DNA from: Callorhinchus milii
Taxonomy: Eukaryota
Direction of reading: 5' to 3'
DNA: 64,000 nucleotides
Assembly: GCF_018977255.1 (NCBI RefSeq)
Contig: NW_024704771.1
Coordinates: forward strand, 868,001-932,000
Shown: positions 25,903 through 60,253 of the stretch, in pieces
Position numbering within the stretch: the stretch's first letter is position 1
How the letters are laid out: the number at the start of each line of letters is the position of its first letter
Position numbers and translations under genes: made by a program
The notes under the pieces: generated by a model
Database searches by the model: none
What the model saw: only the letters and a program-made list of their open reading frames with translations
Told to the model about the DNA's origin: nothing

Positions 25903-26331
25903 NNNNNNNNNNNNNNNNNNNNNNNNNNNNNNNNNNNNNNNNNNNNNNNNNNNNNNNNNNNNNNNNNNNNNNNNNNNNNNNNNNNNNNNNNNNNNNNNNN
26001 NNNNNNNNNNNNNNNNNNNNNNNNNNNNNNNNNNNNNNNNNNNNNNNNNNNNNNNNNNNNNNNNNNNNNNNNNNNNNNNNNNNNNNNNNNNNNNNNNNNN
26101 NNNNNNNNNNNNNNNNNNNNNNNNNNNNNNNNNNNNNNNNNNNNNNNNNNNNNNNNNNNNNNNNNNNNNNNNNNNNNNNNNNNNNNNNNNNNNNNNNNNN
26201 NNNNNNNNNNNNNNNNNNNNNNNNNNNNNNNNNNNNNNNNNNNNNNNNNNNNNNNNNNNNNNNNNNNNNNNNNNNNNNNNNNNNNNNNNNNNNNNNNNNN
26301 NNNNNNNNNNNNNNNNNNNNNNNNNNNNNNN
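25903..26331. other. Assembly gap (429 N)
   Basis: Run of N. Confidence 1.
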
Positions 26332-34095: not shown

Positions 34096-34185
34096 TTGAT
34101 TATATTTGATCACAAATCTCTGTGTGTAATGATCTGATTTGCTGTGTTGTAACCAGTTCTGATCTCATTGTGAAGGTCCTCGAAG

Positions 34186-34243
34186 ATGAGCTGCAAACAC
34201 TGTATTCAGGTCCTGTGGCTTGTGCTTCCCCTCTCACTGACTG
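34186..34243 (+). CDS. BTN gene B signal-peptide exon ([19 protein letters not shown])
   Basis: Acceptor aaccag at 34156, GAAGATGA start, G|gtaagg donor, 58 coding nt. Confidence 0.88.
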
Positions 34244-37200
34244 GTAAGGAAACACATTGAATCTGTTTGATTTCTGTTGGTGTAAATTGCTGAAGATAAA
34301 GGTAAATGATGTGCACAGACTGGTTGCCGCCTTCCCTCCACAAAATACACAGTCGCAGCACTTCACAGTCTATCCTATGAAGATTTTGAGACTTCTCGGC
34401 GACGTGATAATCATAGAATAATCAGAAAATCATAGAATTATACAGCACAAAAGGAGGCCATTCAGCCCAGTAGGCCAACTCTTTTAAAAGTGCCATCCAA
34501 ATCAATCCCAATCCCTTGCTCTTTCCTCATAGCCGCGCAAACCTGTCCTTCACAAATAATTATTTATAAGGTGCTATATCAAATGTAAGGATTATTATTG
34601 TTATCTCAGCAACAGTCTATTGACAGAGTTTGTCTGAGGCAGTGACTGAAAATCCTATCTGTATCCATTGTTTATTATTAAGCAGAGAAATTCACAGTCA
34701 CTGGCCCGGCCCTCCCTGTCCCAGCCATTGCTGGTTCAGATGTTGTCCTGGACTGTAAGTGTTCCATAGACCTGCCACGAGAGGGTGTGGAGGTGAGATG
34801 GTTCAGGACAAGATACGACTCCCCTGTGCACTTATACAAGGAGGGGCGACAGCAACTGGAAACACAGGATGAAGCCTACAGACACAGAACACAACTGTTT
34901 GTAGAGGAATTTATCAACGGCGATGTGTCTCTCAGACTGGGAGATGTGCGGGTGTCAGATAATGGAGCGTACACGTGTTTTGTTGACTATGCCGGATGGT
35001 ATGAAGAGGCAGTGATAGAGTTGAAAGTTATAGGTCAGTAATGTTTATAATTCATTTTATTTCATGTAATCTGTGTGTACAAACATTCATTATTTGTTAA
35101 TGTTATCTTCAAAATGCAATACTTTATAAAAACAAGAACAAGTTATCATTGGTGTAAATGTATTCAGAATGTTGTGGCCTTCAGTAAAGTTACTGCTCTG
35201 TAATGTCCCGGGTATTAATATTGTCTGATTCACGTCTCCTGTCTTCCAGTTCTTGGCAGTCAGCCTTGGATTCACGTTGATGGGCAGCACAGTGATGGTG
35301 TGAGGCTGCGGTGTGAATCCAGTGGATGGTTCCCAGCACCAGAGGTTCTGTGGTTTGATGATCAGGGAAACAACTTAACAACACTCAGTAACTGGACGGT
35401 CAGAGAGGATTCTAAAGGTCTCTTCAGTGTTAAAGGCCAAATAGAAATCATCCATTCAACCAATAAGATCAGGTGTCTGATTCACAATTCAGAAAATGAA
35501 CAAGAAGGCAAACTCCAAATCTCAGGTCAGTAAGTACACTGAAATATTAACAATAGACTGATAGATATGATGCAGATTTGTACAGCACATGAAGTGAAAA
35601 CGATCAGTCTGGATGATACGGTCCACCTGATTTCATCCTTTCAAAATACCAAACTCACCATCTTCAACAACAGCAACAAATGACATTTGTGAAGTGCCTT
35701 TCATGTCAGGAGGACATCCAGTGTGAGAGGCACTATGCAAAGGTGGTGGACAATCAGGGATTTGGACCCACCTGGGGATTGGGGTCAACATGTGGATGGA
35801 GTTTCACAGAATTGGGGCAGAAGTATGGAGTTAGTAGGCCACAGAGATAGGGAGAAGCCGGGCCATGGAGGGCTTTGAAGGCAATGAACCTATTCATTAC
35901 AACAACAAGATTACATTTGTATAGCACAAATGTAATTTGTTTTACTTGACAATAAAGGTTTGAGATTCATCCAGAAATCACATTTGTAAACTGAAATAGA
36001 TAGATATTAGGAATGATTTCCTTTCCTCTGGCATGGTAATTCTCATTCAAAAATGCTGCCGTTACTTCTTCTCAATAAACTTTCACTAAACTCTTTACAA
36101 ACAGGGCTGCTGCCCCATTTCCAACCTGCCCTTCCTCTCCAAGGTGCTGGAATGAGTTGTCGCCTTGAAGTTCAATTCCTTCCTTTCCCACTATTCCCTG
36201 TATAAGTCTTTCCAAACTGCTTCCTGCTGCTCACAGCATCATTACAGCCCTGGCCAAAGGCACAGGTGATGTTCTCTCTGTCTTTGACCAGGAGACCCTG
36301 TGTCTACTTGTCCTTCTCTATCTCTCGCTCACCTTTCACACTGTTGACCACTTCTCCTCCGTGAATCACCTCACAGATTCTGCACATTATTGGTTTCACT
36401 CCTGTCTGTCCCAGCATCTCCATGTTATCTTATTCAATGGCTTCTCCTCCTGCCCAGTGTATTCACAGATGGTGTTCCTCTCCTTTTCCTTATCCACACA
36501 TTCACCCTTGGAGTCTGGCTCTCAGGGACCGGACTAACGAGACAGCCACAAAGAATGGATTTTATTCTGACATTCCCTTACCAACCACATCACTTTGGTG
36601 CCACTTCAGCTCCAAGACTCCATTTATCTCCTGGGAAAAGTATATGAAAATAATAATCCTTGTATTTGATACTGTATGTTATCATGTATTTGAGATGTCT
36701 CAAAGCCCTTCACAGAATATACTGTAAAGTGAAATGAATGTATATTTTGTGGGTGAGACGCGGCAGCCAATTGCAGACAGCAGTGTCCCACAAACAGTCA
36801 CGGATTGAGTGATCAAATTATTATTATTCTATTGTATTATTTGATGGGATTATTAGCTCTGGAAAGCGATCTACCAATCAATGAACAAGCGGGTTCCTAC
36901 TTACTGCTGGGTAAGCAGAGGCATGTGGAGTTTAAACATTAAACTTGTCTAATGTTTCGTTCTGCCCCGGAATCTAACCCGAATCTTCTCGCACTACACT
37001 ACCAGGACTTCACTTGGAGTGAAGCCTGTGACAGCTACTGAGCTACTGTGTGTAACACAGTCACATGGGGACAAATAAAGGTATTTGTGTTTGACATCAG
37101 AATAGATGTTTAAATGTCTATTTACATTTCTTGACAGACGAGTTCTTTCCCAAAGTGCCAGTGGGTTTGGTGGTTTCCGCACTGCTCTTAGGACTTGCCA

Positions 37201-40200
37201 TATTGGTGCTGAGTGTTCTTGTCGGCTTCAGTGTAAAACAGCGCCGAGAGATCAAAGGTACGTTCCCATCAGTAACATCTCCCATCACAACACTGTTTGT
37301 GTAAGAATGTGCAAGTTCTATAAAACAATTGGTCCCTCCCTTCACTCAGTGACCCCCGCGGCCTGTTTCATGTCACCGCCTGATCCTCCCTCCCCACCAT
37401 CAGCAGCTCAGGCTTTCAGCCTCTCTGCCCCCACTCTCTGCAACTCAAGCCAAGAATCCTTCCGACTTCACCCCCTCCCTCTCCATCACCTCTTTCAAGG
37501 CCTGTCCCATGACCTTCCTCATTCTGCATTTTTATTTAATTTTACCCTCTCCCCCCCACCCCAACCCCAGCTCAGACCCCAGCTCAGACCCCAGGTCAGC
37601 CCCCAGCTCAGACCCCAGCTCAGACCCCAGCTCAGACCCCAGTCAGCATTGTGAGGGCTTTGGGATATCCCAGCTCAGATCCCAGCTCAGAGCCCAGTCA
37701 GCTGTGGAAGGTGCTGTGTAAATGTAAATGTTATTGTAATTCAAACCTCCTGTAATTGTGTTGAGCTGCACTTTGTGTAGTTTCTAACTGTTAATGTTGT
37801 AAACATATAGACTGAGCATTAAACAATACTGGATTCAGGAGCGGTTTCTAACAGTTTTGTTTTGTATCCTCCAGATCTTGAGAAGAGAGTGGGTAAGTCA
37901 TCAAAATAAAATAACAATTTCACGTTGTGATTAACCTCATTCACAAGCTTCACACAAAGCAGACATAGTTCATAGAATCATAGAATTGAACAGCACAAAA
38001 GGAGGCCATTCGGCCCATAGAGTCTGTGTCGGCTCTTTGAAAAGAGCAATGTAATGTCAGTCCCACTCCCCAGCCCTTTCCCCATAACCCGCAAACCCGT
38101 CCTCCTCAAATACCATCCACTGCGTTTTTAAAAGTTGTTATCAAATCAGCCTCGACCGCCCTCTCAGGCGATGCCTTCCAGATCCAATGAGATTAATCCC
38201 GGCCTCTCCAGCCTTTCCTCATAATCAAGGGTTCCCTCATTCCGCAGTTGGCTCTATCCTTCTCACTGTGTACCACCCTATCTAACTTTGTGTCGTCGCA
38301 AACTTGGAAATGGTGCTTGTTATACCCAAGTCCAGATCATTTATGTTATAGTTTGCCAACAAAATACACAGTCACTACACTCTCCAGTAAATCGTGCAAA
38401 ATGCTTATGAGGAGCCAAATCTATTTCAAGGATTATTATTATAGAATAACAACAACTTGCACTTATATAGTGCCCTCCACGCAGGATAGCGTCTCAGATC
38501 ACTGAACAGAGACAGAGCCTGATTCTGAGCCGGGCCGAGGGTGGGGGGGGGGGGGGGGGGGGATGGGGGAGCCGACTATAAGCACAGTCGAAAAGGAAGG
38601 TTTTCAGGTGGGATTTGATAAAGAGGAGAGAGGGGGCAAGGCAGAGGGTTTGAGGGAGAGTGTTCCAGAGTTTCGGGGCGTAGTGACTGAATACACGATT
38701 TCCAATGGTGGAGCGGAGGGCAGTAGACAGGGAAGTAGACAGGTGTATGAGGGATAGAGACTTGAAGGGGTTAATGATAGGGCGGGGCAGCTGTTGTTAA
38801 CACTTTGCTCTGAGAGCCCATATAGACTCGATGGTGAATGGCCTCCTTCTGGGCTGTAAATTTCAATGATTCTATTCCATGAATTATTACAGAGTGTTTA
38901 ACTCCAAACATTGGTCTGTTTCACAGCTTCAACTTTCCCTTTTCCTTCCTCAGACAACATTGGCTTATGAACACACACACATTGAGGGAGAGAGAGAATG
39001 AGTGAGTGTCTCTATAACACAGGGAGTGAGTCAATGAGGGCGGGAGGGAGGGAGTGAGGAGGAGAGTGAGGGAGTGAGAGAAGGAGGGAGGGAGTGTGAC
39101 TGAGTTAGGAGCTGACGAAGGTCTGATCACTTCTTTCTTCTTGATTCCAGGGTTGAAAAGGAAGAACACATATGCAGGTAAGATTCTGAGTGACCAAGAA
39201 ACCATCCCACACATATACATACCCTCACCCCACATCCACTGCCCCCCCACCCAACACACACACCCCACACACATAACCACATATCCCCCAACAAACATAC
39301 CCACACATCCCCCACACGCACACCCTCACATCCCCCCACACAGCCCCTCGCATCCCCCCACACACCCCTCACATCCCTTCATACACACACCTTGTCAGCA
39401 GCCCCATGCACACCCTGACATTCCCTCACACAAACACACTCATCTCCCCCCAAACACAACCTCACCCCCACACACCCTCGCATTCCATTACACACACACC
39501 CTCACATCCCCCCCACACACACCCCTCACATGCCCCCCACCCCACCCCCACACATCCTCAAATCCTCCACACACAACCTCATATCCCCACACTCTCACGT
39601 TCCCCACACAAACCCTCACATCCCCCACACACAACCTCATATCCATCACACGCGCATTCCCTCACAATCCACCTCCCACACACACCCTGAAAAGCCCCCC
39701 ACACACACACACACTCTCACATCCCACCCACACCCCCTTCACACCCCTCCATACACACACTCACATCCCCCCACAAACACCCTCAAACACATAGCCTCAC
39801 ATCCTCCCATAGACTTTCTCAAATTACCCCCCACACACATCCTCACATTGACCCCAACCAACCTCATATTAACCCATACACCCCTCACACTCCCCCCACA
39901 CCACACCCTAAAATTCGCCCCCACACACAGCCTGTCATCCCCCACCCCACACATAAACACTGTCACATCTGCCCGACACGCACACACCCTCATATCCACC
40001 CACACACACCCTCACATCCCCTCAAACACACTCACCCTCACATCCCCCCCACATACAGTACCCTCACATTACCCCCACACACATCCTCACATCCCACCCA
40101 CACACACCCTCATATCCACCCGACACACACTGTCAAATCCCCCCCAAACATAACACAACATGTGGGAGCAGGAGGAGGCCATTCGGCCCTTCGAGCCTGC

Positions 40201-43200
40201 CCCGCCATTCAATCATGGCTGATCTTCTAATCTAACTCCAGCTAATAACCTGACGCTGCCTTATCCCCATATCCCTTAATACCTTTGACAATAAGAAATC
40301 TATCCATCTCAGTCTTGAATATGTTCAAGGACGGAGCGTCAACAGCCCTTTGGGGTAGTGAGTTCCATACATTCACTGCCCTTTGAGTGAAGAAGTTCTT
40401 CCTCAACTCAGTGCGAAAGGGCTGCCTCTGATTTTAAGGTTGTGACCCTGGTTTTAGTTTCTCCAACCGGGGACACAATCTCCCACTATCTACTCTATCT
40501 GCCCTTTGATGATCTTATAGGTTTCTATAAGATCCCCTCTAATTCTTCTATATTCTAGAGAATATAGGCCCAAATTGTTCAGCCTATCCTCGTAACTCAT
40601 CCCCTTCATCCCTGGTACTAACCCAGTAAATCTACGCTGCAGCCCTCCGAGGCAAGTACATCCTTCCTTAAATGAGAAGACCAAAACTGCCCCCAGTATT
40701 CCAGGTGTGGTCTCACCAGAGCCCTATACAGTGGCAGCAACACTTCCCTACTCTTATACTCTAATCCTTTCATAATGAATGCTAACATACCGTTCCCCTT
40801 CCTAATTGCTGCTGCACCTGCAGACTAACTTTCTGTGACTGGTGTACAAGGACACCCGAGTCCCTCCGGACACTGACACATTCCAATCTCTCCCCTTCTA
40901 AAAGATAACCCACTCTACTGTTTTTGCTACCGAGGCGGATGACTTGGCACTTCCCTACATTGTACTTCATCGGCACCTACCTGCCCAGTCACCTCACCTC
41001 TCTATGTCTCACTGCATTGTTTTTAATGTCGTCCTCTGTGTTGACACTTCCTCCTCGTTTTGTTTTGTGTCATCCGTGAATTTAGATATATTAACTTCGA
41101 TGTCCTCATCAGATCGTTGGTGTAGATGGTAAATAGCTGAGGCCCAGGGACTGATCCTTGTGGCACTCCACTGGTCACATCCCACCAATCCGAAAAGGAC
41201 CCGTTTATCCCTAATCTGTGTTTCCGACCCGTTAACCATTCCCCAATCCACGTTAATATGGTCCCCAATTCCATGGGCCCTTATCTTTTGGACTAACCTT
41301 TTATGCGGCACCTTATCGAATGCCTTCTGGAAGTCCAAATAGACCACATCCACTGATTCACCCATATCCACTTTACTGGAAATGTCCTCAAAAAACTCTC
41401 TGAGATTTGTCAAACATGACTTCCCTTTTGTAAAGCCGTGTTGACTCGGCCTAATTATATTGTGCCCTAAATACCGCACTACCACATCCTTAATCAACGA
41501 TTCTAAAATGTTTCCCATCACTGATGTGAGACTAATTGGTCTATAGTTCCCCATCTTTTCCTTTCCACCTTTTTTAAACAGTGGTGTGACATTTGTGATC
41601 TTCCAGTCCATGGGCACTGCTCCAGAATCCAAGGAATTTTGGAAGATCAGACACAGGGCCTCCACTATCTCATACGCTCCTCTTCTCAAACCCTGTGATG
41701 CAAACCATCCGGACCGGGGGATCCGTCACTGTTTAGTGCTCACAGTTTCCCGACACCAATTCTCTGCTGATGGAAATTTCCCTAAGTTGCTCCCTGTCCC
41801 TCACGTCCCCCCCCACCCCACACGCACCCACACGTACTCCCCACACGCACCCTCACGCCCCCCACACGCACCCTCACATACTGCCCACACACACCCTCAC
41901 GCCCCCCACACAAACACCCTCACAACCCCCCACACACACCATCATGAGCCGCCACACACACCCTCACCTCCCCCCAACACACAACCTCACGACCGCCCAC
42001 ACGCACCTGCACGTCCCCCCCACGACCACCCTCACGTCTCCCCCACACGCACCGTCATTACGCCACCACACACCCTCACATCCCCCACACGCAGCCTCAC
42101 GTCTCCCCCACACAAACCTCACGTGCCCCCCACAAGCAGCCGCATGTCCCTCCCACATGCACCCTCACCTCCCAACCACACGCACCCTCACTCACACACG
42201 CATACTCACGAGCCTCACAAATGCACACTCACATTCCTCCACAACCATGACATCCCCCGCACACGCACCCTCACGTTCCTCCATACACACCCTCATGTTG
42301 CTCCACATGAACCCTCACATCCCCCCCACACACACCCTCATGTTCCTCTACACACACACCTGTTCCATCACCCCCACACACACTCACGTCCCATACAAGA
42401 ACCCTCACGTCACCCCCACACACAGACTCACGTACCCCACACACGCACCCTCACGTCCCCCACACATGCACCCTCACGTCCCCCACACACGCACACTCAT
42501 GTCCCCAAGACACGCGCCCTCACATCCCCCCCACATGCACCCTCACATCCCCCACACGCACCCTCACATCCCCCACATGCACCCTCATGTACCTCCACAC
42601 GCACACTCACGTTCTCCCATACGCACACTTACCTCCACCCCACACGCACCCTTACGTCCCCCCCACACGTACACTCTCATGTCCCCCCCACACGAGCCCT
42701 CACATCCCCCACACGCACCCTCATGTTCCTCCACATGAACCTTCATGTCCACCGCACACACACCCTCACGCTCCCCCGCCTACACACGCCCTCACGCTCC
42801 CCCCGACACTAATCCTCATGCCCCCCCCTCCACACACACGCTCACGTGCCCCCCATACACACCCCCTCACATCCCCTCCACACACACCCTCACATCCCGG
42901 CCACAGACACACATTCAGCCCCACAACACACACCCTCACATCCCCCCAACTCATCCTCACACCACCACCTAACACACAAAATCACATCTACCCCCCAACA
43001 AACACCCTCACATCCCCCCACAAACACCCTCACATCCTCCCACACACACCCTCACATCCCCCCACACACACCCTCACATCCCCCACACACACCCTCACAT
43101 CCACTCCCACACACCCTCACGTCTCCCCCCACACATTCCTCCCACACACACCCTCACATGCCCCCACACACACCCTCACATCCCCACACACACCCTCACA

Positions 43201-46200
43201 TCCCCCCACACACAACCTCACATCCCCCACACACACCCTCACATCCCCCCACACACAACCTCACATCCCCCCCACACAGCCTCACATCTCCCCCCACACA
43301 TTCCCCCCACACACACCCTCACATCCCCCCCACACACCCTCACATCACTCCCACACACACCCTCACATACCCCAGAGACACCCTCACATCCCCCCACACA
43401 CACCCTCACATCCACTCCCACACACACCCTCACATCCCCCACACACACCCTCACATCCCCCCCCACACACCCTCACATCCACTCCCACACACCCTCACAT
43501 CCCCCCAACTCACCGTCACATCCCCCCACACAGGCCCTCACATCCCCCGACAAACACCCTCACATCCCCCCACACACACCCTCACATCCCCCCACACACA
43601 ACCTCACATCCCCCCACACACACCCTCACATCCCCCCCACACACACCCTCACATCCCCCCACACACACCCTCACATCCCCCCCACACACACCCTCACATA
43701 CCCCCGCACACACCCTCACATCTCCCCCCAAACATTCCCCCCACACACACCCTCACATCCCCCCCACACACACCCTCACATCCCCCCACACACACCCTCA
43801 CATCCACTCCCACACACCCTCACATCCCCCCCACACACACCCTCACATCCCCCCACACACACCCTCACATCCCCCCACACACACCCTCACATCGCCCCCA
43901 CACCCACACATGCACCCTCACATTCCTCCACACGCACCCTCATGTTCCCCCCACGAAGCACACTCACGTCCCTCACACACGCACCCTCATGTTCCCCCAA
44001 GCGCACCCTCATGTCCCCCCCACGAAGCACACTCACGTCCCTCACACACGCAGCCTCATGTTACCCCACACGCACACTCACGTCCCCTACACATGCACCC
44101 TCGTGTCCCCCGCACACGCACCCTCAGACAGCCTCATGTCAACTCCACACGCACCCTCACGTCAACCCCACACCCAGCATGTCTTGACCCTCACGCAGCC
44201 TCACATCCCTCCCACATGCACCCGCATGTCTCCCGCACAAGCACCCTCACACAGCGACACGTTCACATCACACGCACCCTCACATCCCCTGCACACGCAC
44301 CCTCATGTCGCCTCCACACGCACCCTCAAGCAGCCTCATGTTCACCCCAAATGCACCCTCACGTCCCTCCGCACACGCAACCTCACGTCCCCCCACATGC
44401 ACCCTCACATACCCCCCACAGGCACCCTCACCTCCCCCCAACACGCACCCTCACGTCACCCCCACATGCATCCTCACGTCACACCACACGCACACTCACG
44501 TTCCCCCCCCACACACCCTCACGTCTCCCACACACACCCTCACGTACCCCACACGCACCCTCACGTCCCCACCACACACACCCTCATGTCCCCCCCACCC
44601 GTACACTCTCACGTCCCCCCCACATGCGCCCTCATATCCCCCACACATGTACCCTCACATCCCCCACATGCACCCTCATGTTCCTCCACATGAACCCTCA
44701 CGTCCCGTGCACACGCACCCTCACTCTCCCCCCCCCACTAATCCTCACGCCACCCCCCTCCACAAGCACGCTCACTCGCACCCCCACACACACCCTCACA
44801 TCCCCCACACACACCCTCACATCCACTCCCACACACCCTCACATCCCCCCACACACACCCTCACATCCACTCCCCCACACACACCCTCACATCCCCCCAC
44901 AAACCCCTCACATCCCCCCACACACAGCCTCAGATCCCCCCACACACACCCTCACATCACCCCACACACACCCTCACATCCCCCCACACACCCCTCACAT
45001 CCCCCACACACCCTCACATCCCCCCCACACACACCCTCACATCGCCCCCACACACACCCTCACATCCACCCCACACACACACCCTCACATCCACTCCCAA
45101 CACCCTCACATCCCCCCCACACACACACGCACATCCACTCCCACACACCCTCACATCCGCCCCACACACACTCACATCCCCCCCACACACACCCTCACAT
45201 CCCCCCCACACACACCCTCACATCCCCCCCACACACACACGGACATCCACTCCCACACACACTCACATCCCCCCTACACACACCCTCACATCCCCCCACA
45301 CACACCCTCACATCCCCCCACACACACCCTCACATCCCCCCACACACACCCTCACATCCCCCCCACACATAGCCTCACATCCCCCCCACACATAGCCTCA
45401 CATCCCCCCCACACACACCCTCACATCCCCCCACACACAGCCTCACATCCCCCCCCACACCCTCACATCCCCCACACACAGCCTCACATCCCCCCACACA
45501 CACCCTCACATCCCCCCACACACAGCCTCACATCCCCCCACACATAGCCTCACATCACCTCCACACACACCCTCGCATCCCCCTACACACACCCTCACAT
45601 CCACTCCCACACTCACCCTCACATCCACTCCCACACACACCCTCACATTCCCCCACCACACAACCAATCATATCCCCCCACACACATACACCCCCTCACA
45701 TTCCCCCACCACACAAACCCTCACATCACCCCCACAGACACACCTTCAGACCCCCAACACTTCCCCCCAACTCAGCCTCACCCCACCCCCCAACACACAA
45801 AATCACATCTACCCCCCGACAAACACCCTCACATCCCCCCTCACACACCCTCACACCCCCACACACCCTCACATCCCCCACACATACCCTCACATCCCCC
45901 GCACATACCCTCACATCCCCCACACATACCCTCACATCCCCCACACATACCCTCACATCCCCCCACACATACCCTCACATCCCCCCACACACACCCTCAC
46001 ATCCCCCCACACACACCCTCACATCCCCCCACACACACCCTCACATCCCCCCCACACACACACCCCCACATCCCCCCCACACACCCTCACATCCCCCCAC
46101 ACACCCTCACATCCCCAACACACACACCCTCACATCCCCCCACACACACTCACATCCCCCCACACACACCCTCACATCCCCCCACACACACCCTCACATC

Positions 46201-49200
46201 CCCCCACACACACACCCTCACATCCCCCCACACACACACCCTCACATCCCCCCACACACACCCTCACATACCCCCTCACACACCCTCACATCCCCCCCAC
46301 ACACCCTCACATCCCCCACACACACACCCTCACATCCCCCCTCACACACCCTCACATCCCCCACACACACCCTCACATCCCCCCACACACACACCCTCAC
46401 ATCCCCCACACACACACCCTCACATCCCCCCACACACCCTCACATCCCCCCACACACACCCTCACATCCCCCCACACATACCCTCACATCCCCCACACAC
46501 ACACCCCACACACCCCCCACACACCCTCACATCTCCCCACACACACCCTCACATCCCTCCACACACACCCTCACATCCCCCCACACACACACCCTCACAT
46601 CCCCCCCACACACCCTCACATCCACTCCCACACACCCTCACATCCATCCCCATACACACCCTCACATCCACTCCCACATGAGCCCTCACATTCCCCCACA
46701 CGCACCCTCATGTCCCCCCCACGAAGCACACTCACGTCCCTCACACACGCAGCCTCATGTTACCCCACATGCACACTCACGTCCCCTGCACATGCACCCT
46801 CGTGTCCCCCGCACACGCACCCTCAGACAGCCTCAAGTCAACCCCACACGCAGCATGTCTTGACCCTCACGCAGCCTCACATCCCCCCCACACGCACCCG
46901 CATGTCTCCCGCACAAACACCCTCACACACACCCTCACATCTCCTGCACACGCACCCTCATGTCGCTTCCACACGCACCCGCAAGCAGCCTCATGTTCAC
47001 CCCAAATGCACCCTCACGTCCCCACCACACACACCCTCATGTCCCCCCCACCCGTACACTCTCACATCCCCCCCACATGCGCCCTCATATCCCCCACACA
47101 TGCACCCTCACATCCCCCACACGCACACTCACGTTCCCCCACACGCACCCTCACGTTCCTCCACATGCACACTCACGATTCCCTGCACACGCACCCTCAT
47201 GTCCCCCGCACACGCACCCTCAGACAGCCTCATGTCAACTCCACATGAACCCTCACGCCACCCCCACACGCAGCATGTCTTGACCCTCACGGAGCCTCAC
47301 GTCCCCCCCACAAGCACCCTCACACAGCATCACGTTCACCTCACACGCACCCTCACATCCCCTGCACACACACCCTCATGTCGCCTCCACACACACCCTC
47401 AAGCAGCCTCACGTTCACCCCAAACGCACCCTCATGTCCCCAGCACACGCTCAATCACGTCCCCCCACACGCACCCTCACGTACACCCCACAGGCACCCT
47501 CGCCTCCCCCCAACATGCACCCTCACGTTACCCCCACATGCATCCTCACGTCACCCCCACACGCACCCTCATGTCACCCCCACACGCAACCTCACGTCAT
47601 CCCCACACGCACCCTCACATTCCCCCATACGCACCTTTTTGTCATCCCCATACGCACCCTCATGACACCCGCACAAGCACCCTCACACAGGCTCACGTTC
47701 GACTCACACGCACCCTCATGTCCCCCGCACACGCACCTTCAAGCAGCCTCACGTCCCCCCCACACGCACCCTCACATTCCCCCACACGCACCTTTTTGTC
47801 ATCCCCACACGCACCCTCATGTCCCCCGCACACGCACCTTCAAGCAGCCTCACGTTCACCCCACACGCACCCTCACATTCCCCGCACACGCACACACACG
47901 TCCCCCTACACACGCACCCTCAAATCACCCCCACATGCACCGTCACGTCCCTCTCACAAGCACCCTCACCTCACCTCACCTCCACACGCACCCTCACATC
48001 CACCCCACACGCAGCCTCACATCTCCCCTATATGCACCCTCACATGCCCCGCTACACGCAGCCACGCGTTCCCCCCACACGCACCCTCACGTCCCCCCCA
48101 CACGCACCCGCATGTCTCCCGCACAAGCACCCTCACATCTCCTGCACACGCACCCTCATTTTGCCTCCACATACACCCTCAAGCAGCCTCATGTTCACCC
48201 CAAATGCACCCTCTCGTCCCCCCACACGCGCAGCCGCGCATCCCCCCCACACGCACCCTCACGTCCCCCCCACAAGCAACCACACCTCACCCCCACACGC
48301 ACCCTCACGTCACCCCCACATGCATCCTCACGTCCCCCCCACACGCACCCTCACATTCACCCCACACACAGCCTCACGTCTCCCCCATACGCACCCTCAC
48401 GTGCCCCCCCACACATAGCCACACGTCACACCCACATGCATCCTCACGTCCCCACCACACGCACATTCGTGTCCCCCACACGCACCCTCATGTTCCTCCA
48501 CATGAACCCTCACGTCCCGTGCACACGCACCCTCACGATCCCCCCCCACTAATCCTCACGCCCCCCCCTCCACAAGCACGCTCACGTGCACCCCCACACA
48601 CACTCACATCCCCCCACACACACCGTCACATCCACTCCCACACACGCCCTCACATCCCCCCACACACACCCTCACATCCCCCCCACACGCACCCTCACTT
48701 CCCCCCCACACGCACCCTCACCTTCCCCCCACACGCACCCTCACCTTCCCCCCACACGCACCCTCACATCACCCCCACACGCATCCTCATGTCACCCCCA
48801 CACGCACCCTCACGTCCACCCCACACACACCTTTTTGTCATCCCCACATGCACCCTCAAGTCTCCCGCACACACCCTCACGTCCCACCCACATGAACCCT
48901 CACTTCCCCCCCACCCTACGCACCGTCACGTCACCCCCACACGCAACCTTACGTCACCCCCGCACACGCCCTCTCAAGTCCCCTCTGCACGCGCACCCTC
49001 ACATCCCCACCAAACGCACCCTAACGTTCCTCCACAACACCCTCATGTCCCCCCACACACACTCACGTTCATGCACACTCACACTCACGTCCCCCGCACA
49101 CGTACCCTCACATCCCACCACATGAACCCTCACGTCCCCCCACATGCACCCTCACATGCACCCTCACGTCCCCCCCATACACAACCTGACTTGAGCCCCA

Positions 49201-50771
49201 CACACCGTCACTTCCCCCCCACCCCCCACACGCACACTCACCTCCAGCCCACATGCACCCTCACGTCCTCCCCACGCACACCCTCATGTTCCCACAACGC
49301 ACACCGTCACCTCCCTCCCACACGCACACTCACATCCCCCACACACCCTCATGACCCGCCCACACGCACACTCACATGCCCTCACGTACCCCCACACACA
49401 TCCTCATGTCGCTCCGACATGCACCCTTACTTCCCCCACACACTAACCTCACGTACCCCCACACGCACCCTCACATCCCCCCCACATGCACCCTCTCGTC
49501 CCCCAACACATGCAGCCCCACTTCACCCCACAAGCACCCTTGCTTCCCCCCTACACACCCTCAGCCCCCCACACACCCTCAGCCCCCCCCACACACCCTC
49601 AGCACCCCCCACACACCCTCAGCCCCCCCACACACCCTCAGCCCCCCCACACACCCTCAGCCCCCCACACACCCTCAGCCCCCCCACACTCCCTCAGCCC
49701 CCCCCACACACCCTCAGCCATCCCCCACACACCCTCAGCCCTCTCCACACACACTCAGCCCTCTCCACACACCCTCAGCCCTCCCCACACACCCTCAGCC
49801 CTCTTACACCCTCAGCACCCCCCACATACCATCAGCCCCCCCACACACCCTCAGCCCCCCCACACACACCCCCATACACACACCCTCAGCCCCCCACACA
49901 CACCCTCAGCCCCCCCACACACACCCTCAGCCCCCCCACACACACCCTCAGCCCCCCCCCACACACACCCTCAGCCCCCCCACACACACCCTCAGCCCCC
50001 CCACACACACCCTCAGCCCCCCCACACACACCCTCAGCCCCCCCACACACACCCTCAGCCCCCTGACGCACACCCACACATTCCCCCCCACACAAACTCC
50101 TCCCCCACAGAGACACAGACTCTCAGCCTTTTTGCGGATTCTGTTCCCAGGAGATGTCGATGTTTTACACAAAGGCTTCTCTCCCGGTGACGACGCTGAA
50201 GATCATCTTATTTATGATTGTAAATGTGTCCGACATTAATGGTCTGATTCTCCCTCCAGTTACAGTCACTCTGGATCCTGACACAGCCCATCCCCGGCTC
50301 ATCCTGTCTGAGGACCTGACCAGTGTGAGACACGAAGACGAAGAGCAGCCGCTCCCTCACTCCCCGAAGAGGTTTAGTAACTATCCCATTGTCCTGGGAT
50401 CTGAGGGCTTCACATCGGGGAGACATTACTGGGAGGTGCAGGTGGGCAACAAGTCAATGTGGGCTGTGGGATTGGCCACAGAGTCTGTCAACAGGAAACA
50501 ACCAATGAGGTGGTCACCAGAGGGTGGGGTCTGGGGGGTGGAGCTGTGGGACGGGGTCTATTATGCTCTGACATCACCCCCCACCCGCCTGACCCTGACA
50601 GTGAGACCCGGGAAGGTCGGGGTTTACATGGACTATGAGGGGGGACAGATGTCATTTTACAACGCTGACAACATGGCTCATCTCCACACTTTCACCCAAA
50701 CTTTCACTGAGAAACTTTATCCTCTGTTCAATCTCTGGTTTGGTTCTGAACCTCTGACAATCTGTCGGTGA
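34186..50771 (+). CDS. Butyrophilin-like gene B, complete model, 452 aa (signal-IgV-IgC-TM-2 mini-exons-B30.2)
   Basis: join(34186..34243,34686..35033,35250..35525,37138..37257,37875..37892,39151..39177,50260..50771) = 1359 nt. All junctions are gt-ag and phase 1, with no internal stop. Confidence 0.93.
34415..34560 (-). mobile_element. CR1 3'UTR fragment
   Basis: atcatagaattatacagcacaaaaggaggccattcagccc, the reverse CR1 tail. Confidence 0.65.
34686..35033 (+). CDS. BTN gene B IgV exon
   Basis: 348 nt. Encodes [56 protein letters not shown], a hallmark BTN IgV. Confidence 0.96.
35250..35525 (+). CDS. BTN gene B IgC exon
   Basis: 276 nt. Encodes [25 protein letters not shown]; ttccag/gtcagt sites. 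Confidence 0.95.
36100..36640 (+). mobile_element. Old L2 fragments
   Basis: ccccatttccaacctgcccttcctctccaaggtgctgg matches the 5' part of the L2 at ~52610. Confidence 0.6.
36649..37047 (-). mobile_element. tRNA-derived SINE (family of 15652-15958)
   Basis: Reverse tail and body; degenerate head near 37000-37047. Confidence 0.7.
37138..37257 (+). CDS. BTN gene B transmembrane exon
   Basis: 120 nt. Encodes [40 protein letters not shown]. Confidence 0.92.
37563..37700. repeat. 12-bp tandem repeat (cccagctcagac)
   Basis: Direct inspection. Confidence 0.85.
37875..37892 (+). CDS. BTN gene B mini-exon (18 nt, DLEKRV)
   Basis: tttgtatcctccag acceptor, gtaagt donor, phase 1-1. Confidence 0.75.
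37968..38180 (-). mobile_element. CR1 3'UTR fragment
   Basis: catagaatcatagaattgaacagcacaaaaggaggccattcggccc. Confidence 0.7.
39151..39177 (+). CDS. BTN gene B pre-B30.2 mini-exon (27 nt, GLKRKNTYA)
   Basis: ttctttcttcttgattccag acceptor, CAG|gtaaga donor. Confidence 0.82.
39200..50110. repeat. ~11-kb C/A-rich degenerate satellite (core cacaccctcacatcccccc; ccctcagccccc variant at ~49556-50065) filling the last intron of gene B
   Basis: Continuous low-complexity array, interrupted only by the CR1 at 40147-41795; it generates long His/Pro/Thr pseudo-ORFs. Confidence 0.95.
40147..41795 (-). mobile_element. 5'-truncated CR1-clade LINE (RT) inserted in the satellite
   Basis: [69 protein letters not shown]; frameshifted; CR1 3'UTR near 40150-40330. 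Confidence 0.93.
50260..50771 (+). CDS. BTN gene B terminal B30.2 (PRY-SPRY) exon
   Basis: Encodes [19 protein letters not shown]...[10 protein letters not shown]...FTEKLYPLF, ending in TGA; paralog of 13083-13597. Confidence 0.96.
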
Positions 50772-50909
50772 CGGTTAATGAGGAGGAAAATTAGTCCATT
50801 ATAATGAGGAGCAAAAACCCTCAGCCATTAACTTGATACATTGGGGGTGAAAATATTCTTGGGGGGAGTGGGGGGGAGGGTGTGCACTTTAAAATGGGCA
50901 TCACCCCGA

Positions 50910-51375
50910 CCATCACCCTATACACACCCTCACATTCCCCCCCCACCCCACCGTACCCTCACATCACCCCACACACACACACACTGACATCCCCCCCACA
51001 CACACCCTCACATCCCCCCCACACACACCCTCACATCCCCCCCACACACACCCTCACATCCCCCCCACCACACCCTCACATCCCCCCACACACACCCTCA
51101 CACCCCCCCCACACACACCCTCACATCCCCCCACACACACACACCCTCACATCCCCCCCCCACCCCACCACACCCTCACATCCCCCCCAAACACACACCC
51201 TCACATAACCCCTCCCACACACACACCCTCACATAACCCGCCCCACACACACTCACATCACCCTCAGACTCACCCTCACATTCCTCCCCCACCCCACACA
51301 CAGCCTCACATAACCCCCCCACACACCCTAACACCCATCCCCCCCCCCCCCCCCCCCCCCCACACACCCCCTCAC
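50910..51375. repeat. C/A-rich satellite downstream of the gene B stop codon
   Basis: Same ccctcacatcccc unit, ending in a poly-C run. Confidence 0.9.
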
Positions 51376-51741
51376 ACCTGTGTTGGGAGAATCTGACTTG
51401 CCATCCAGTGTGTGACTCACACGCTCTGAGACAGGGATATATATCGCTGATATCTTTCTCTCCAGCAATGCCCAGTCTCACAGTCGGGGCTGTGCTCAGA
51501 ATCTCACTGAAATCTCCCAAATCACTTTTATATCTATAAACAGGTGCCGTGTTGTTCCCCAGTGAGTGGCCGCGTCTCACTGTGTATAAACACTGTGTAT
51601 TTTCAGTGACAGCTTTTATAATCTGTCACATTTCTCACTCACTGTAACAATCTTTAACCTTCAATAAACCGAGGTCACGTCTGTGTGGATATTAATATCC
51701 AAAATATTGTCATTCACTTACAAAATACTCGATCAATTTAC

Positions 51742-51747
51742 AATAAA
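51742..51747 (+). terminator. Candidate polyadenylation signal of gene B
   Basis: AATAAA at the position homologous to 14344. Confidence 0.5.
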
Positions 51748-52535
51748 TAATGTATCATTTTATGTCCAATCCTTATGCACAGTCTACACACACTCCTCAC
51801 CCTCTGATACACACATCCCTAACCCTCACCCCCTGAAACTCACACCCTGAGTTGTCTTAATTCACTCTCCAACTTACTGTGCAGAGACCACACAGATAAC
51901 ACAGTGCTGAGACACCGAATGCCCACCTCCTCCTCTGACCCTCGTTACTCTCACCGGCAGTGTTTGTTTCTGGTCCAGTTGTTGCCTCTCTCTCCGGCCT
52001 CACCGGCTGCTCCAGGTTTAGGGTTCGCTCCGTGGACTTTCATTGATTTCCCACATTTCCAACTCCATTTTAGAATTTGAGAAACCAGTGACATTGAACT
52101 CAGATCGTGTGGATGTATTCCAGAGGAATAATAACAATAATCCCTCCATTTAATACAGCACCTCATCACATCACTGAGACATCACAAATCGCTTCACAGA
52201 ATATATTGTAAAGTGTATTGACTGTGTGTTCTGTGGGCAAAATACTGCAGCCAATTGCACACAGCAGTTTCCCACAAATAGTCATGGATTGAGTAACCAA
52301 ATTATTTTTTGGGAGAGATTATTGACCACAGAAAGCGATCCACCAATCAACTGTCAACTGGGTTCCCACTTAACTGCTGGTAAACAGAGGTGTGTGGAAT
52401 AAGGAAACTTGTCTAAGATGTAAAGGGGATTGACTGGATATTTTATGAACAAAATGTTCAGGGAGTGAGGAATGGGTGAAGACGCTGTGGAGCATAATCA
52501 CCGCATGGACTGGTTTGACCGAGTTGCCTATTTAG

Positions 52536-54131
52536 TTAAAAACTGCCATCATCACGCCCACCCTGAAAAAACCCTCCCTTGATGCGTCGCAGCTATCAAG
52601 CTACCTGCCCATCTCCAACCTCCCTTTTCTCTCCAAGGTCTTGGAAAGAGTTGTCGCCTCCCAACTGCGCTCTTTCCTCTCCACCCATTCTCTTTTTGAA
52701 CCCCTTCAGTCAGGTTTCCGTGCTGCCCATAGCACAGAAACTGCCCTGGTCAAGGTCACCAATGATATCCTGACTATCTGTGACCAGGGCTCCCTCTGTC
52801 TCCTCGTCCTCCTCGACCTATCGGCAGCATTCGATACGGTCGACCACGCTATCCTACTCCACCGCTTGTCCTCCCACCTCAACCTTCAAGGCACTGTCCT
52901 TGAATGGTTTAGCTCTTACCTTTCCCACCGTCTTCACTTCGTCTCAACGAATGGCTTCTCCTCCACCCCCCGTACTGTCTCATGTGGTGTCCCTCAGGGC
53001 TCTGTCCTCGGTCCCCTCCTCTTCACCCTCTATATGCTCCCCCTTGGTGACATCATCCGCAAACATGGGGTTAACTTCCACATGTATGCGGATGACACCC
53101 AACTCTACCTTTCCTCCTCTACTCTCAACTCCACGACCACCGATGTCCTGACAGCCTGCCTGTCCGACATCGAGTCCTGGACGAGAGACAACTTTCTTCA
53201 GCTCAACGTGCGAAAAACCGAGGCCCTCCTGATTGGCTCACGTCAGCGCCTCCGCACCTCAGGCGCTGACACCATCAGCATCCAAGGCTGCACTCTCCAC
53301 CTCTCAAAGCCAGTCAGGAACCTCGGCGTTTTGTTCGACCCTGAGCTGTCCTTTCTCCCTCACATCCGCACCACAACTGGCACCGCCTTCCATCACCTCC
53401 GGAATATCGCCAGATTACGGCACTACCTCACCCCTCACGCTGCTGAAACCCTGGTTCACGCCTTTGTCACCTCAAGGCTGGACTATGGGAACTCTCTCCT
53501 CGCCGGCCTTCCCGGCACCTCCCTCCACAAGCTGCAGGTCATTCAGAACTCTGCAGCTCGTGTACTGTCCCGCACCAGGCTTCGGGACCACATCACTCCT
53601 ACCCTCGCTCGCCTCCACTGGCTCCCCATCCCCCAGAGGATTGATTTCAAGATCCTCATCCTCACCTACAAGGCCATTCACGGCCTTGCTCCCTCCTACC
53701 TCTCCAACCTACTATCCCCTACCTACCTGCCCGTAACCTCCGTTCCTCTGGCTCCGGTCTGCTCCACGTCCCCCGCCCCAACCGCCCTACTATCGGTGGT
53801 CGGGCCTTCAGCCTCTCAGCCCCGAGGCTCTGGAACTCCATCCCCCAGTGCCTTCGCCGCTTCCTCCCTTTCCTCCTTCAAGGCCGGTCTCAAAACCTTT
53901 CTCTTTGACCGTGCCTTCAGCTCCCCTCTCGACTCTCTTCCTCCTCCTCGCTCCCTCCCTTCCCTCCCCTCACCCTGACCATTTCCCCCCTCCTCTCTCC
54001 CTCCCTTCCCTCCCCTCACCCTGACCATTTCCCCCCTGCTCGGGTCATGACCCAACTGTGCAGCGCCTTGGGACGTCCTCCTGACGTGAAAGGCGCTCTA
54101 TAAATGGAATCTTGTTGTTGTTGTTGTTGTT
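52536..54131 (+). mobile_element. 5'-truncated young L2 LINE with an open 445-aa RT ORF (52641-53978) and (TTG)n tail
   Basis: [58 protein letters not shown] and LHWLPI motifs. Confidence 0.96.
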
Positions 54132-57383: not shown

Positions 57384-57466
57384 TGTACAAACACAAATCT
57401 CTGTGTGTAATGATCTGATTTGCTGTGTCGTAACCAGTTCTGATCTCATTGTGAAGGTCCTAAAAG

Positions 57467-57524
57467 ATGAGGTGGAAACACTTTCTTCAGGTCCTATGGC
57501 TTGTGCTTCCCCTCTCACTGACTG
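57467..57524 (+). CDS. BTN gene C signal-peptide exon ([19 protein letters not shown]); no IgV/IgC follows
   Basis: Paralog of 34186-34243 with intact ATG and splice sites; homology to gene B stops at ~57575. Confidence 0.75.
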
Positions 57525-58776
57525 GTAAGGAAACACATTGAATCTGTTTGTTGGTGTTAAATTGCTGAAGGCAATGAAGGCACTGAGCCCCGAAGCTCTG
57601 GATTCCCTCCCTCAATCCCTCCGCCCATTGCCCCCTCCCTCCCCACTTTCAAATCCCATCCAAAGACCTTACATTTTGATTGTGTTCACTGTCACCTCTC
57701 CCCTCCCTCTACCCCTGGATCGGGGTCAGACTCCACCTCTGTCAAGCGCTCTGGGACGCTGCCCCGCGTGAAGGACGCAATATAAATGCAAGTTGTTGAA
57801 TATAAACTCAAGTCTAATAAGTGGAGACATTGCTATATGGGGGCGGTGCTGCCGCCATCTGGTGGTGACAAGATGAACGGCAGTGGGTTCCAGGACCAAC
57901 ATCTGTCACTGAAGCACTCGCCCAGTCAGTCATCGGGTCCTTTTCCATGTTGTTGAACGATTCTTTTCACCTCTCTTTCATTGTTTCAGGCTCTCTTCTA
58001 AGGGCTTTACTAACGGTTGGACTATTTCTCTTAGCGTTGTTTTATATTCTCCCTTCATCAGTCCTCTGTCACCTGACAATATTTCTCTACAATGTTGTCA
58101 GTCTCCAAATGTTTGCATTGTTCTGGTGTTGGTGGACACAAAGTGCAGACAGTGGGAAAGGTAAGATTGAAGCCAAACAAAGCCAAAACCCCATGACGGT
58201 GGGGATGAGAGTAGAGACGATGGTGGACAGCATCAGCTCAGGTAAACGTCTCACATCTTCTGATGTTTAAAATGTGAATGATGTACATTTACTGATGCAA
58301 AAGCTGACAGTCTGTCATGAACAAGGAATGTCTCTGAGGGATTCCACCTGAATATGCCAAAGCTGTGCATCAGCCCGGCTCAGTCTGTAACACTCTCACA
58401 CACACCAGGACTTTCAGCTCACAGCCTCGGATGACCCTCTGGTCCAGAGCTGAGGGAATTAATATAAGGTCCTGTCTGTGCCTATTCAGGTGAATGTAAA
58501 AATCTCACACTACTAATGAATAGAGAACTGTCTCTGTTACAAGAATCAAATCACTAAAGCCGGTCTGTCAGGGCTGACAGATTCTCCCATTCTGTCCTGA
58601 GGAGCAGTCGCTGCCCACACACTGTCTGTGCCCCACACTCCCGCCTGCAACTGTCCTGCTCCTCGAGCCCCTCACTCCTCTTTGTCTAATGTTTCTGTCT
58701 CTCAGCTCCGGCCTCTCCGACTCTGGATCCTGATACCAGGACTCCGGGTATTTGGAATTCAGTGCCAGGACGATAG
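57467..58776 (+). other. Putative chimeric BTN-5'/TRIM-3' gene or pseudogene (possible 99-aa ORF)
   Basis: join(57467..57524,57990..58160,58706..58776) is in frame with gt-ag sites; expression unknown. Confidence 0.4.
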
Positions 58777-59935
58777 GGATCGACACCAAAATAAGTTTTG
58801 AAAAGGTTTCCGTGGGCCTTCGCTGTGTGTCCTCCCGTGGGCTCCCCTCTCCTGTCACACTGAGCAGCCTCACCATCCTCACTGGCCGTCACAGGGGCCG
58901 GGGATACCCACTGTCACTCAGATTGTTTGAATCACTGATTCACTATCTCCTGTTCCTGGATTCAAACAATTACAATTTATTGGTGTTTTACAATAAAGCA
59001 GTAAATGCCGGGACCGACATTGGAATGACACTCAGCTGGAAATTCCGGCTCTCCAGACGGGATCTCCCCCATTGGTCCGGCCTCGAGCCGGGGGTTCAGT
59101 GTAATGAGCCACTGTAGCCGCCAGACAGCACAATCAGCACCAGCACCGCAACAGCTCGTCTGGATTAACATCATTCAGAGCATCAGAGGAACCTGACACC
59201 CAATGTGTGGGAGCAAAACGTGAGCCATCTGTGTAAAGCTCATCGCCAGCTCGTCTCTGTGCTCGTGTTGGGAGAATCTGACTTGCCATCCAGTGTGTGA
59301 CTCACACGCTCTGAGACAGGGATATATATCGCTGATATCTTTCTCTCCAGCAATGCCCAGTCTCACAGTCGGGGCTGTGCTCAGAATCTCACTGAAATCT
59401 CCCAAATCACTTTTATATCTATAAACAGGTGCCGTGTTGTTCCCCAGTGAGCGGCCGCGTCTCACTGTGTATAAACACTGTGTGTTTTCAGTGACAGTTT
59501 TTATAATCTGTAACATTTCTCTCTCAATCACTGTAACAATCGCCCAAGAAGTGAGATCTTTAGCCTTTAAGCCGAGGTCACGTCTGTGTCTGTTCAAGTG
59601 GATATTAATATCCAAATATATTGTCATTCACTTGCAAAAAACTGTCACAATTTACAATAAACCATATTATTATTATTTTATGGCCAATCATTATACACAG
59701 TCTACACACACCCCTCACCCTCAGATACACACATCCCTCACAGTCAGCCCCTGACCCACACCCTGAGATGTCTTAACTCCCTCTCCCCCTTATGTACAGA
59801 GACCACACGGATAACACAGCGCTGAGACACCGAATGCCCACCTCCTCCTCTGACCCTCATTACTCTCTGCTCCAGTGGTTGTTTCTGATCCAGTTGTTGC
59901 TTCCCTCTCCAGCCTCACCGGCTGCTCCATGTTTG
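57585..59935 (+). repeat. Duplicated block: TRIM 3' end + full 3'UTR module (57585-59380 ~ 21740-23544; 59270-59935 ~ 51380-52015)
   Basis: Colinear similarity by inspection; AATAAA at 58992 and 59656. Confidence 0.9.
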
Positions 59936-59941
59936 GGGTTT

Positions 59942-60253
59942 GCTGAGACATCTCAAAATGCTTCAGAGAACATACTGTAATGTGTAGTGACTGTGTGTTC
60001 TGTGGGCGAAACGCTGCAGTGAAGTGTGCACAGCAGTGACCCACAAACAGTCGTGAATTGAGTGACCAAATTAATTTTGGGGAGAGATTATTACCCCCAG
60101 AAAGCGATCCAACATCCAATTATCAACCAGGTTCCTACTTACCGCTTGGCAAAGAGAGGTGTGTGGTGTAAGGAAACTTGTCTAAGGTTTCGCCCCACCC
60201 AGGAATCTCTCACTTGTGAGGCGAGTGCTCTCACCACTGAGCTATAGGACTCT
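59942..60253 (-). mobile_element. tRNA-derived SINE
   Basis: ctcaccactgagctataggactc head on the reverse strand, plus the shared body and tail. Confidence 0.78.

Follow-up and report, generated by a model that had tools for sequence, protein, structure and literature searches.

A probable chimeric pseudogene made of butyrophilin and TRIM fragments in an elephant shark BTN/TRIM cluster

The stretch of DNA analysed here (64,000 nt, hereafter the window) derives from a cluster of butyrophilin (BTN) and TRIM (A33-like) genes in the elephant shark, Callorhinchus milii. UniProt models of C. milii match the Ig exons of one of its genes, gene B (34682-35032 and 35249-35530), with 100% identity. Proteins of C. 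milii named "butyrophilin subfamily 1 member A1-like" gave the best full-length matches, and the BTN and TRIM matches carry the names C. milii butyrophilin and zinc-binding protein A33-like. None of the NCBI protein models of the newer assembly mapped to the window at ≥96% identity; three annotated BTN paralogs for comparison were taken from loci L001-L003 of contig MU249860.1. The window is vertebrate DNA with many transposable elements, and it contains one N gap (25903-26331). Its main features, all on the + strand, are as follows.

Gene A (+), BTN-like, with its 3' part inside the window: IgC-like exon 715-975, TM exon 1632-1778, B30.2 exon 13082-13594
18357-20770 (+), A33-like TRIM pseudogene, exons 1-4, with the RING/B-box exon at 18357-18765; exons 5-6 deleted
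21737-23544 (+), copy T, the sister of the duplicated block in gene C, lying 3' of the TRIM pseudogene
Gene B (+), BTN: signal exon 34186-34243, IgV, IgC, TM exon ~37104-37250, B30.2 exon 50259-50768
57467 onward (+), gene C, the candidate locus

Gene C was originally predicted to be an in-frame chimera, in which a BTN 5' non-coding region and signal exon switch at ~57580 into a duplicated TRIM 3' block and are spliced through a hydrophobic 171-nt exon to a TRIM terminal exon; the 99-aa product was proposed to be a newly assembled small membrane protein, possibly a decoy or regulator, with the fallback that the locus might be just a rearrangement relic. The pieces that can be recognised in and around it are listed below.

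57392-57466 (+), BTN 75-bp block, near-invariant between genes B and C and the three BTN paralogs
57467-57524 (+), BTN signal-peptide exon with an intact phase-1 donor (GT at 57525-57526)
57525-57570 (+), first 46 nt of BTN intron 1; end of homology to the BTN paralogs
57571-57580, rearrangement junction, where BTN intron 1 meets the duplicated block
57578-57800 (+), 5'-truncated 3' end of a LINE-like element
57990-58160 (+), hydrophobic candidate exon; its first ~140 nt are T-rich and non-exonic, its last ~33 nt lie within the TRIM exon-5 relic
58128-58241 (+), TRIM (A33-like) exon-5 relic, start approximate
58242-58705 (+), TRIM intron-5 relic between two relic splice sites
58706-58776 (+), TRIM B30.2 terminal-exon stump, B30.2-derived in its first ~31 nt (APASPTLDPD) only
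58734-60200 (+), BTN-type 3' UTR or flank abutting the B30.2 stump, with AATAAA at 58992 and 59656

The open frame is present exactly as predicted. The ATG lies at 57467-57469 and the signal exon ends in CTG/GTAAGG in phase 1 (the slash marks the splice point), the 171-nt interval, with tttcag/ before it and /gtaaga after it, can be read through in phase 1-1, and the acceptor tctcag/ precedes 58706. The TAG stop at 58774-58776 falls in the last exon, so nonsense-mediated decay would spare the mRNA. Translation of the joined exons reproduces the claimed 99-aa product in full, including the peptide APASPTLDPDTR, and the alternative donor at 58241 (CAG/GTAAAC) is likewise in frame. Both AATAAA signals lie downstream on the + strand, although this motif is frequent locally (71 copies across the window).

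The splice signals are strong. Scored with approximate matrices typed from general knowledge, the donors reach 9.4 bits (57524), 10.8 bits (58160) and 7.4 bits (58241), and the acceptors 10.8 bits (57990) and 10.1 bits (58706). The first acceptor of at least 6 bits past the signal-exon donor is that at 57990, and no other open AG..GT interval on the window's + strand scores as high as 57990-58160, which outranks the genuine Ig exons. With thresholds of 8 bits on both sites, an open path occurred in 2-4.5% of 200 dinucleotide shuffles. The candidate frame is therefore more than a coincidence of the level produced by shuffling; part of the excess of splice sites is explained by the descent of 58241 and 58706 from a real TRIM gene, of which they are relics, as set out below.

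The left part of gene C is of BTN origin. Positions 57392-57570 show 88-93% identity to the 5' ends of four BTN genes, the nearest relative in the window being the 5' end of gene B with its signal exon (34111-34295, 92%), and the signal exons of gene C and gene B (the latter starting at 34186) share 80% amino-acid identity. The 75-bp block that precedes the BTN ATG probably represents the portion of exon 1 that forms the 5' UTR or core promoter. With the 75 bp, the ATG and the donor GT all in place, gene C does retain the BTN 5' non-coding block and an intact signal exon, as had been claimed. Upstream of 57392 the homology of gene C to gene B is lost; in two intact paralogs the similarity to gene B extends here over 0.5-0.9 kb, and the annotated paralog P0056 also shares just ~100 bp. 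A GTAGTAT-like simple sequence lies upstream in both P0056 and gene C.

The predicted switch from BTN sequence to the duplicated block was located by self-comparison and three-way alignment to 57571-57580, where the BTN paralogs run on into ordinary intron sequence. Such a join could in principle have been produced during assembly, by the merging of reads from paralogous units so that a BTN exon-1 fragment became attached to a TRIM-relic block. The setting would suit an error of this kind, since the cluster is highly repetitive with many units of 85-96% identity, an N gap lies within the window, a LINE fragment sits directly at the junction and the genes of the window are missing from the NCBI protein models of the newer assembly. 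We nevertheless regard an assembly artefact as highly improbable. Both sides of the junction are distinct from all other copies (91-93% identity to BTN paralogs on one side, 96% to copy T on the other), so that neither is a misplaced duplicate of another part of the window; the parental sequences have no long repeat in common at which an assembler might have switched, and there is no LINE at this position in the BTN paralogs; and on its 3' side the block continues unbroken into the BTN-type flank for a further 800 bp.

To the right of the junction, 57578-59384 is 96% identical to copy T over 1816 bp. The LINE-like piece with which the block begins matches a LINE copy at 53810-53953 and has several further copies in the window and the comparison loci; its 5' edge coincides with the boundary of the homology between gene C and copy T. 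Derivation of the block by LINE 3'-transduction was considered and rejected, because copy T and the L001 copy are homologous for 650 bp further upstream. This upstream continuation of copy T (21087-22370) matches intergenic DNA downstream of the TRIM gene in L001.

The exon-5 relic in the block aligns with exon 5 of two TRIM paralogs and ends at 58241/58242 in the ancestral phase-1 exon-5 donor (CAG/GTAAAC); the acceptor that it once had, tttgcag in the paralogs, is gone. At 58706 the TRIM B30.2 exon still has its ancestral acceptor, with 58692-58736 corresponding to the start of exon 6 of P0144 (L001 13257-13301, 93%), and the intron-5 relic between these two sites differs from copy T by 4.3%. 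When 58241 is joined to 58706, the translation reads MVDSISS/APASPTLDPDT and fits the exon5/exon6 junction seen in A33-like TRIMs of several cartilaginous fishes: in a 22-protein set, the joined sequence MVDSISSAPASPTLDPDT matches MINSINSAPASLTLDPNT of P0135 and MIDSISPAPAPLTLDPNT of P0129 with E values of 5e-6 to 2e-5. The last exon was thus rightly attributed to TRIM as far as its origin is concerned, since APASPTLDPDT opens the B30.2 exon of A33-like TRIMs. In sequence and phase alike the pair agrees with a TRIM junction; it is a relic and not a working exon pair.

Only a stump of the B30.2 exon remains. The DNA from 58734 to 60200 shows 88.6% identity to L003 14225-15667, a match that begins 250 bp past the L003 B30.2 stop, and has further homology in gene A (13872-14498) and gene B (51380-52417); in gene A, 58734 onward corresponds to DNA 278 bp beyond the B30.2 stop. 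Since this sequence lies beyond B30.2 stops elsewhere, a deletion of ~0.75 kb removed the B30.2 domain, and since the same deletion is present in copy T it is older than the duplication. Weak similarity of 58780-58890 to B30.2 (E = 0.1-1) was discounted, as the DNA there matches BTN 3' UTR or flank instead.

The TRIM gene adjacent to copy T is itself dead. With 76% identity to P0123, it belongs to the "zinc-binding protein A33-like" group, and an in-frame ATG is missing from the stretch that separates its upstream stop from the RING (HGCREQ, compared with MAGREQ in paralogs). The B-box is frameshifted (NHKS / HSVMSIDKAAEIYK), which brings in a TGA at 18753; exon 2 contains an in-frame stop (FRA*FGQ) and exon 3 a further frameshift; exon 4 is still present at 20748-20770. 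The pseudogene is colinear with the P0123-like TRIM of L001 until 20829-21020 (L001 22544-22354, upstream of exon 5) and then jumps, 21087-22370 corresponding to L001 19225-17935, downstream of the last exon of that gene. This break in colinearity and the jump past the last exon of the paralog imply that the TRIM at 18357 has lost its own exons 5-6, for which reason the block was rejected as the 3' end of this particular gene. The term "TRIM 3' block" is accordingly apt in that the block does hold relics of TRIM-type 3' exons, but they do not come from a live TRIM; the duplicated block is older debris, of a kind normally located downstream of TRIM genes in the cluster.

The hydrophobic interval has a different origin again. 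Within the window, similarity of 57990-58160 to the BTN TM exon or to any other sequence was sought and copy T alone was found. A displaced BTN transmembrane exon was rejected as its source, the TM exons of gene B (~37104-37250) and gene A (~1632-1778) being unrelated to it, and so was a genuine coding exon of an A33-like TRIM, exon 5 being 116 nt long in two paralogs and aligning just with ~58128-58241. Intron 4 of P0144 is an unrelated 85 nt. The T-rich stretch has a T content of 41.7%, compared with 24.6% for the window, and T occupies the second position in 46% of the codons of the interval (F, L, I, V, M), so that the hydrophobicity of 57990-58160 is a consequence of base composition. In gene C the mean Kyte-Doolittle value over 19 residues reaches 2.4 within the hydrophobic run. 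A third copy, 84% identical, lies at L001 18557-17920 in DNA for which NCBI gives no gene call, and its corresponding frame is broken by three stops within 11 codons of its start and by a net frameshift.

Neither known domains nor homologues were recovered for the predicted product. No Ig, BTN-TM or B30.2 exon was found 3' of the gene C signal exon; tblastn with C. milii BTN proteins, in search of the IgV/IgC ectodomain exons, gave no match past 57529; RING, B-box and coiled-coil exons are absent between 57467 and 58706; and in place of an intact B30.2 (PRY/SPRY) terminal exon APASPTLDPD alone survives. Pfam searches returned no family and no interaction domain for the 99-aa product, no family for the second open frame (57913-58161) or the 126-aa alternative product, and no match for either open frame of 57990-58160. 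Among proteins of 54-173 aa in 5.8 billion clusters, nothing matched the 99-aa product at E ≤ 10. A HMMER search of 1.84 billion representatives with a 133-aa ORF retrieved two ORFs and nothing else, P0121 and P0122 (E = 8e-11), which were rejected as homologues because they are artefacts, translated tandem repeats with 8-9 matched stretches.

These results bear on a rival reading of the locus, that gene C is a very young, lineage-specific chimeric gene in which exon shuffling and de novo exonisation have yielded a mature membrane micro-protein of ~80 aa. We consider this quite unlikely. On this reading the BTN 5' block would drive transcription, the BTN signal peptide would target the product to the ER and the exonised T-rich segment would supply one or two membrane-spanning helices. 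What speaks for such a gene is the preservation of its front end (ATG, signal exon and donor intact, 75-bp 5' block conserved), a very strong acceptor and very strong donors with no competing acceptor ahead of 57990, and a hydrophobic run that has stayed uninterrupted in the gene C lineage while copy T gained R, D and R there; new transmembrane peptides arising from T-rich non-genic DNA are also documented (PMC7005711). It would, on the other hand, be a gene without an Ig, B30.2 or other interaction domain, and no such predicted protein occurs in the libraries searched, which cover genomes and assembled read sets.

The pattern of substitution offers it no help either. Between copies C and T, the candidate exon 2 differs by 10/171 substitutions (5.8%), 58161-58241 by 6/81 (7.4%) and the coding part of exon 3 by 6/71 (8.5%), compared with 59/1807 (3.3%) for the whole block and 25/653 (3.8%) for adjacent unique non-coding DNA. 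The candidate exons have thus, if anything, evolved at a higher rate than their non-coding neighbourhood (odds ratio 1.6, p = 0.16), and 9 of the 10 exon-2 differences alter an amino acid. When changes were polarised by the third copy, 4-6 exon-2 changes (3-5 non-synonymous, 1 synonymous) fell on the C lineage, against 2 in the upstream 210 nt. Comparison of the two copies, polarised by the third, therefore reveals no sign of purifying selection on the candidate exons, although the counts are small and, as copy T has no signal exon and is not expected to be constrained, the comparison of C with T has little power to detect constraint confined to C. We would read this substitution pattern as absence of evidence for selection, which falls short of proof of neutrality.

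Against a young gene stand a substitution density no lower than that of the flanks, the ratio of non-synonymous to synonymous change on the C lineage, and the recent and accidental nature of the stop and tail. The TAG at 58774-58776 arose through a T-to-A change found in C alone, the codon being TTG or CTG in copy T and two outgroups; the C-terminal tail and stop differ between C and T, and copy T would read into another tail. A gene C that encodes a newborn, elephant-shark-specific secreted or membrane-anchored micro-protein, too young to display either constraint or homologues, is in our judgement very unlikely.

A good BTN 5' block and good splice signals make transcription and the proposed splicing plausible. 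The BTN 5' block may well drive transcription of gene C, and the RNA may be spliced in the predicted way, the resulting transcript or peptide having no selected function. A related possibility is that gene C is a transcribed non-coding relic, whose spliced RNA, driven by the BTN 5' block, has a non-coding role (for example in promoter competition) or none. The splice sites, the 5' block and the lack of coding constraint are all compatible with it; conservation, however, is no greater than the age of the duplication accounts for, and we think this reading unlikely.

We propose that gene C is probably a non-functional mosaic, a chimeric pseudogene created by rearrangement within the tandemly duplicated BTN/TRIM cluster. 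A BTN copy has retained no more than 75 bp of 5' sequence, the signal-peptide exon and 46 nt of intron 1, and this remnant is joined at 57571-57580, without a common repeat, to a copy of a cluster block made up, in order, of a truncated LINE tail, T-rich unique DNA, a TRIM exon-5 relic, an intron-5 relic, ~10 B30.2 codons and a BTN-type 3' UTR. The 99-aa frame can then be put down to three unrelated accidents. The first is the intact donor of BTN exon 1. The second is a stop-free T-rich stretch situated just upstream of the old exon 5 and in frame with it, which acquired a consensus acceptor while a GTAAG arose within the old exon. The third is the survival of the old B30.2 acceptor, after which the C-specific T-to-A change gives a stop 23 codons on.

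The chimeric gene of the original prediction is accordingly borne out as a structure, a BTN 5' end with its signal exon joined at ~57575 to a duplicated block, and not as a decoy, a regulator or any other new membrane protein. A small membrane protein of recent assembly finds no support when most of the key exon is T-rich and non-exonic in origin, the third copy is broken, and neither a signal of selection nor a homologue is seen; the fallback of a rearrangement relic is to be preferred, with no conservation, homologues or domains to set against it. The alignments and searches demonstrate the anatomy of gene C, the origins of its pieces and the lack of conservation and of homologues. We infer that no functional protein is made from it. 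It counts against a relic that the splice-like sites are unusually good and the upstream 75 bp as well kept as in annotated paralogs, and a very young gene need not have homologues.

If gene C is such a relic, the finding is routine and its value lies in caution and in annotation. Tandemly repeated immune-gene clusters such as those of BTN and TRIM shed fragments, and in-frame genes can be mimicked as a result; a gene call needs more than an undamaged signal exon, splice sites that fit the consensus and a hydrophobic frame free of stops. Gene C also documents the interleaving and decay of BTN and A33-like TRIM units, with their common B30.2 exons and 3' flanks, in a cartilaginous fish. If it were instead a young gene, it would be a clean case of vertebrate gene birth by exon shuffling and exonisation in an immune cluster.

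Set beside the families from which it is derived, gene C shares with C. milii BTN genes (P0001, butyrophilin subfamily 1 member A1-like; P0056, butyrophilin-like protein 8) the 5' block, signal exon, donor and 46 nt of intron 1, and its 3' UTR or flank from 58734 is also BTN-type. It differs from them in having no IgV, IgC, TM, heptad or B30.2, everything between intron 1 and the 3' UTR having been replaced. With the class IV A33-like / nuclear factor 7 TRIMs of cartilaginous fish (P0123, P0129, P0135, P0144) it shares the exon5/exon6 junction, for which the pattern in A33-like TRIMs is M(I/V)xSIS(P/S) followed by APA(S/P)LTLDP(D/N)T; unlike these it has no RING, B-box or coiled coil, its B30.2 is gone after ~10 codons and its exon-5 acceptor is lost. 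Gene C is thus BTN-derived at both ends and TRIM-derived in the middle, and lacks the defining features of both families.

Rearrangements and exon exchange of comparable kinds are known. Human BTNL8*3 is a chimeric BTNL8-BTNL3 gene that arose when 56 kb were deleted within a segmental duplication (PMC3729544), and resembles gene C as a BTN-cluster rearrangement in which 5' exons are fused to the 3' part of another gene with the frame kept. It was, however, formed from two intact homologous genes and keeps its Ig, TM and B30.2 parts, whereas the 3' partner of gene C is dead TRIM debris that contributes no domain. B30.2 domains are single-exon modules that have been shuffled between TRIMs and other families (PMC2657112), but in gene C the shuffled exon is a mere 10-codon stump. 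Thymine-rich non-genic DNA can also give rise to membrane peptides de novo (PMC7005711), and this has a likeness in the T-rich non-coding stretch of gene C, a homologous copy of which is intergenic and which translates into a transmembrane-like peptide. By analogy with such cases, the passage from T-rich DNA to a transmembrane peptide would be the only route by which gene C might be anything beyond a relic.

The 75 bp adjoining the butyrophilin (BTN) start codon on its 5' side are near-invariant across five paralogs, two in the window and three at Callorhinchus milii loci of contig MU249860.1 (L001 to L003), and conservation among these five is higher there than in the signal-peptide codons. 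For two of these paralogs, all homology stops exactly at the 5' edge of the block.

Window 57392-57466: 75-bp BTN upstream block
Window 34111-34185: 75-bp BTN upstream block
L001 314-240, minus strand: 75-bp BTN upstream block
L002 5926-6000: 75-bp BTN upstream block
L003 5926-6000: 75-bp BTN upstream block

The two copies of the duplicated block, one in the mosaic gene C (57578-59384) and one beyond the TRIM pseudogene (21737-23544), have diverged unevenly, by 1.3–2% at both ends and 5.4% in the middle 800 bp, a pattern that gene conversion of the block ends could explain. The gene C junction carries one fragment of the 3' tail of a LINE open frame, a tail that is repeated as many fragments in the window and the fetched loci.

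Window 52536-53975, plus strand: LINE reverse transcriptase open frame, 480 codons
Window 18357-20770, plus strand: A33-like TRIM pseudogene, RING/B-box exon through exon 4
L001 10001-13839: NCBI model P0144, 'zinc-binding protein A33-like', 465 aa

The TRIM pseudogene lacks an in-frame ATG upstream of the RING, its B-box is frameshifted and runs into a TGA at 18753, exon 2 (96 nt, 19477-19572) contains an in-frame stop, and exon 3 is frameshifted. Exon 4 (20748-20770) is intact, and relative to the L001 paralog a deletion of ~3.1 kb took exons 5-6. The annotated model P0144 has no RING and starts in an upstream exon, the same sequence as precedes the pseudogene in the window (17959-18111); this model may be rescuing a gene that has partly decayed.

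In BTN gene B, a C-rich minisatellite of 8.3 kb fills the last intron and reaches the B30.2 exon itself. It consists of about 370 copies of a 22-23-bp unit, CCCCACACACACCCTCACATCC, and has a GC skew of about -0.8.

Window 41816-50093: C-rich minisatellite of gene B
Window 11245-13059: similar array, before the gene A B30.2 exon
Window 50837-51393: similar array, 3' of the gene B B30.2 exon
Window 715-975, plus strand: gene A IgC-like exon
Window 1632-1778, plus strand: gene A TM exon
Window 13082-13594, plus strand: gene A B30.2 exon
L003 13459-13973: B30.2 pseudo-exon with a frameshift, 2.6 kb 3' of the P0056 CDS

The IgC-like exon of gene A shares only about 33% identity with BTN IgC. The TM exon of this gene matches, at 90% identity, the N-terminus of P0073, an annotated C. 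milii protein of 307 aa ('nuclear factor 7, ovary-like'). P0073 consists of a TM, a coiled region and B30.2, with both RING and Ig domains missing, and domain-shuffled architectures are thus present as gene models in the cluster. A second annotated protein, P0056 ('butyrophilin-like protein 8', 249 aa), has Ig domains only and is followed by the B30.2 pseudo-exon; its BTNL-type architecture therefore seems to have originated by decay of the B30.2 exon.
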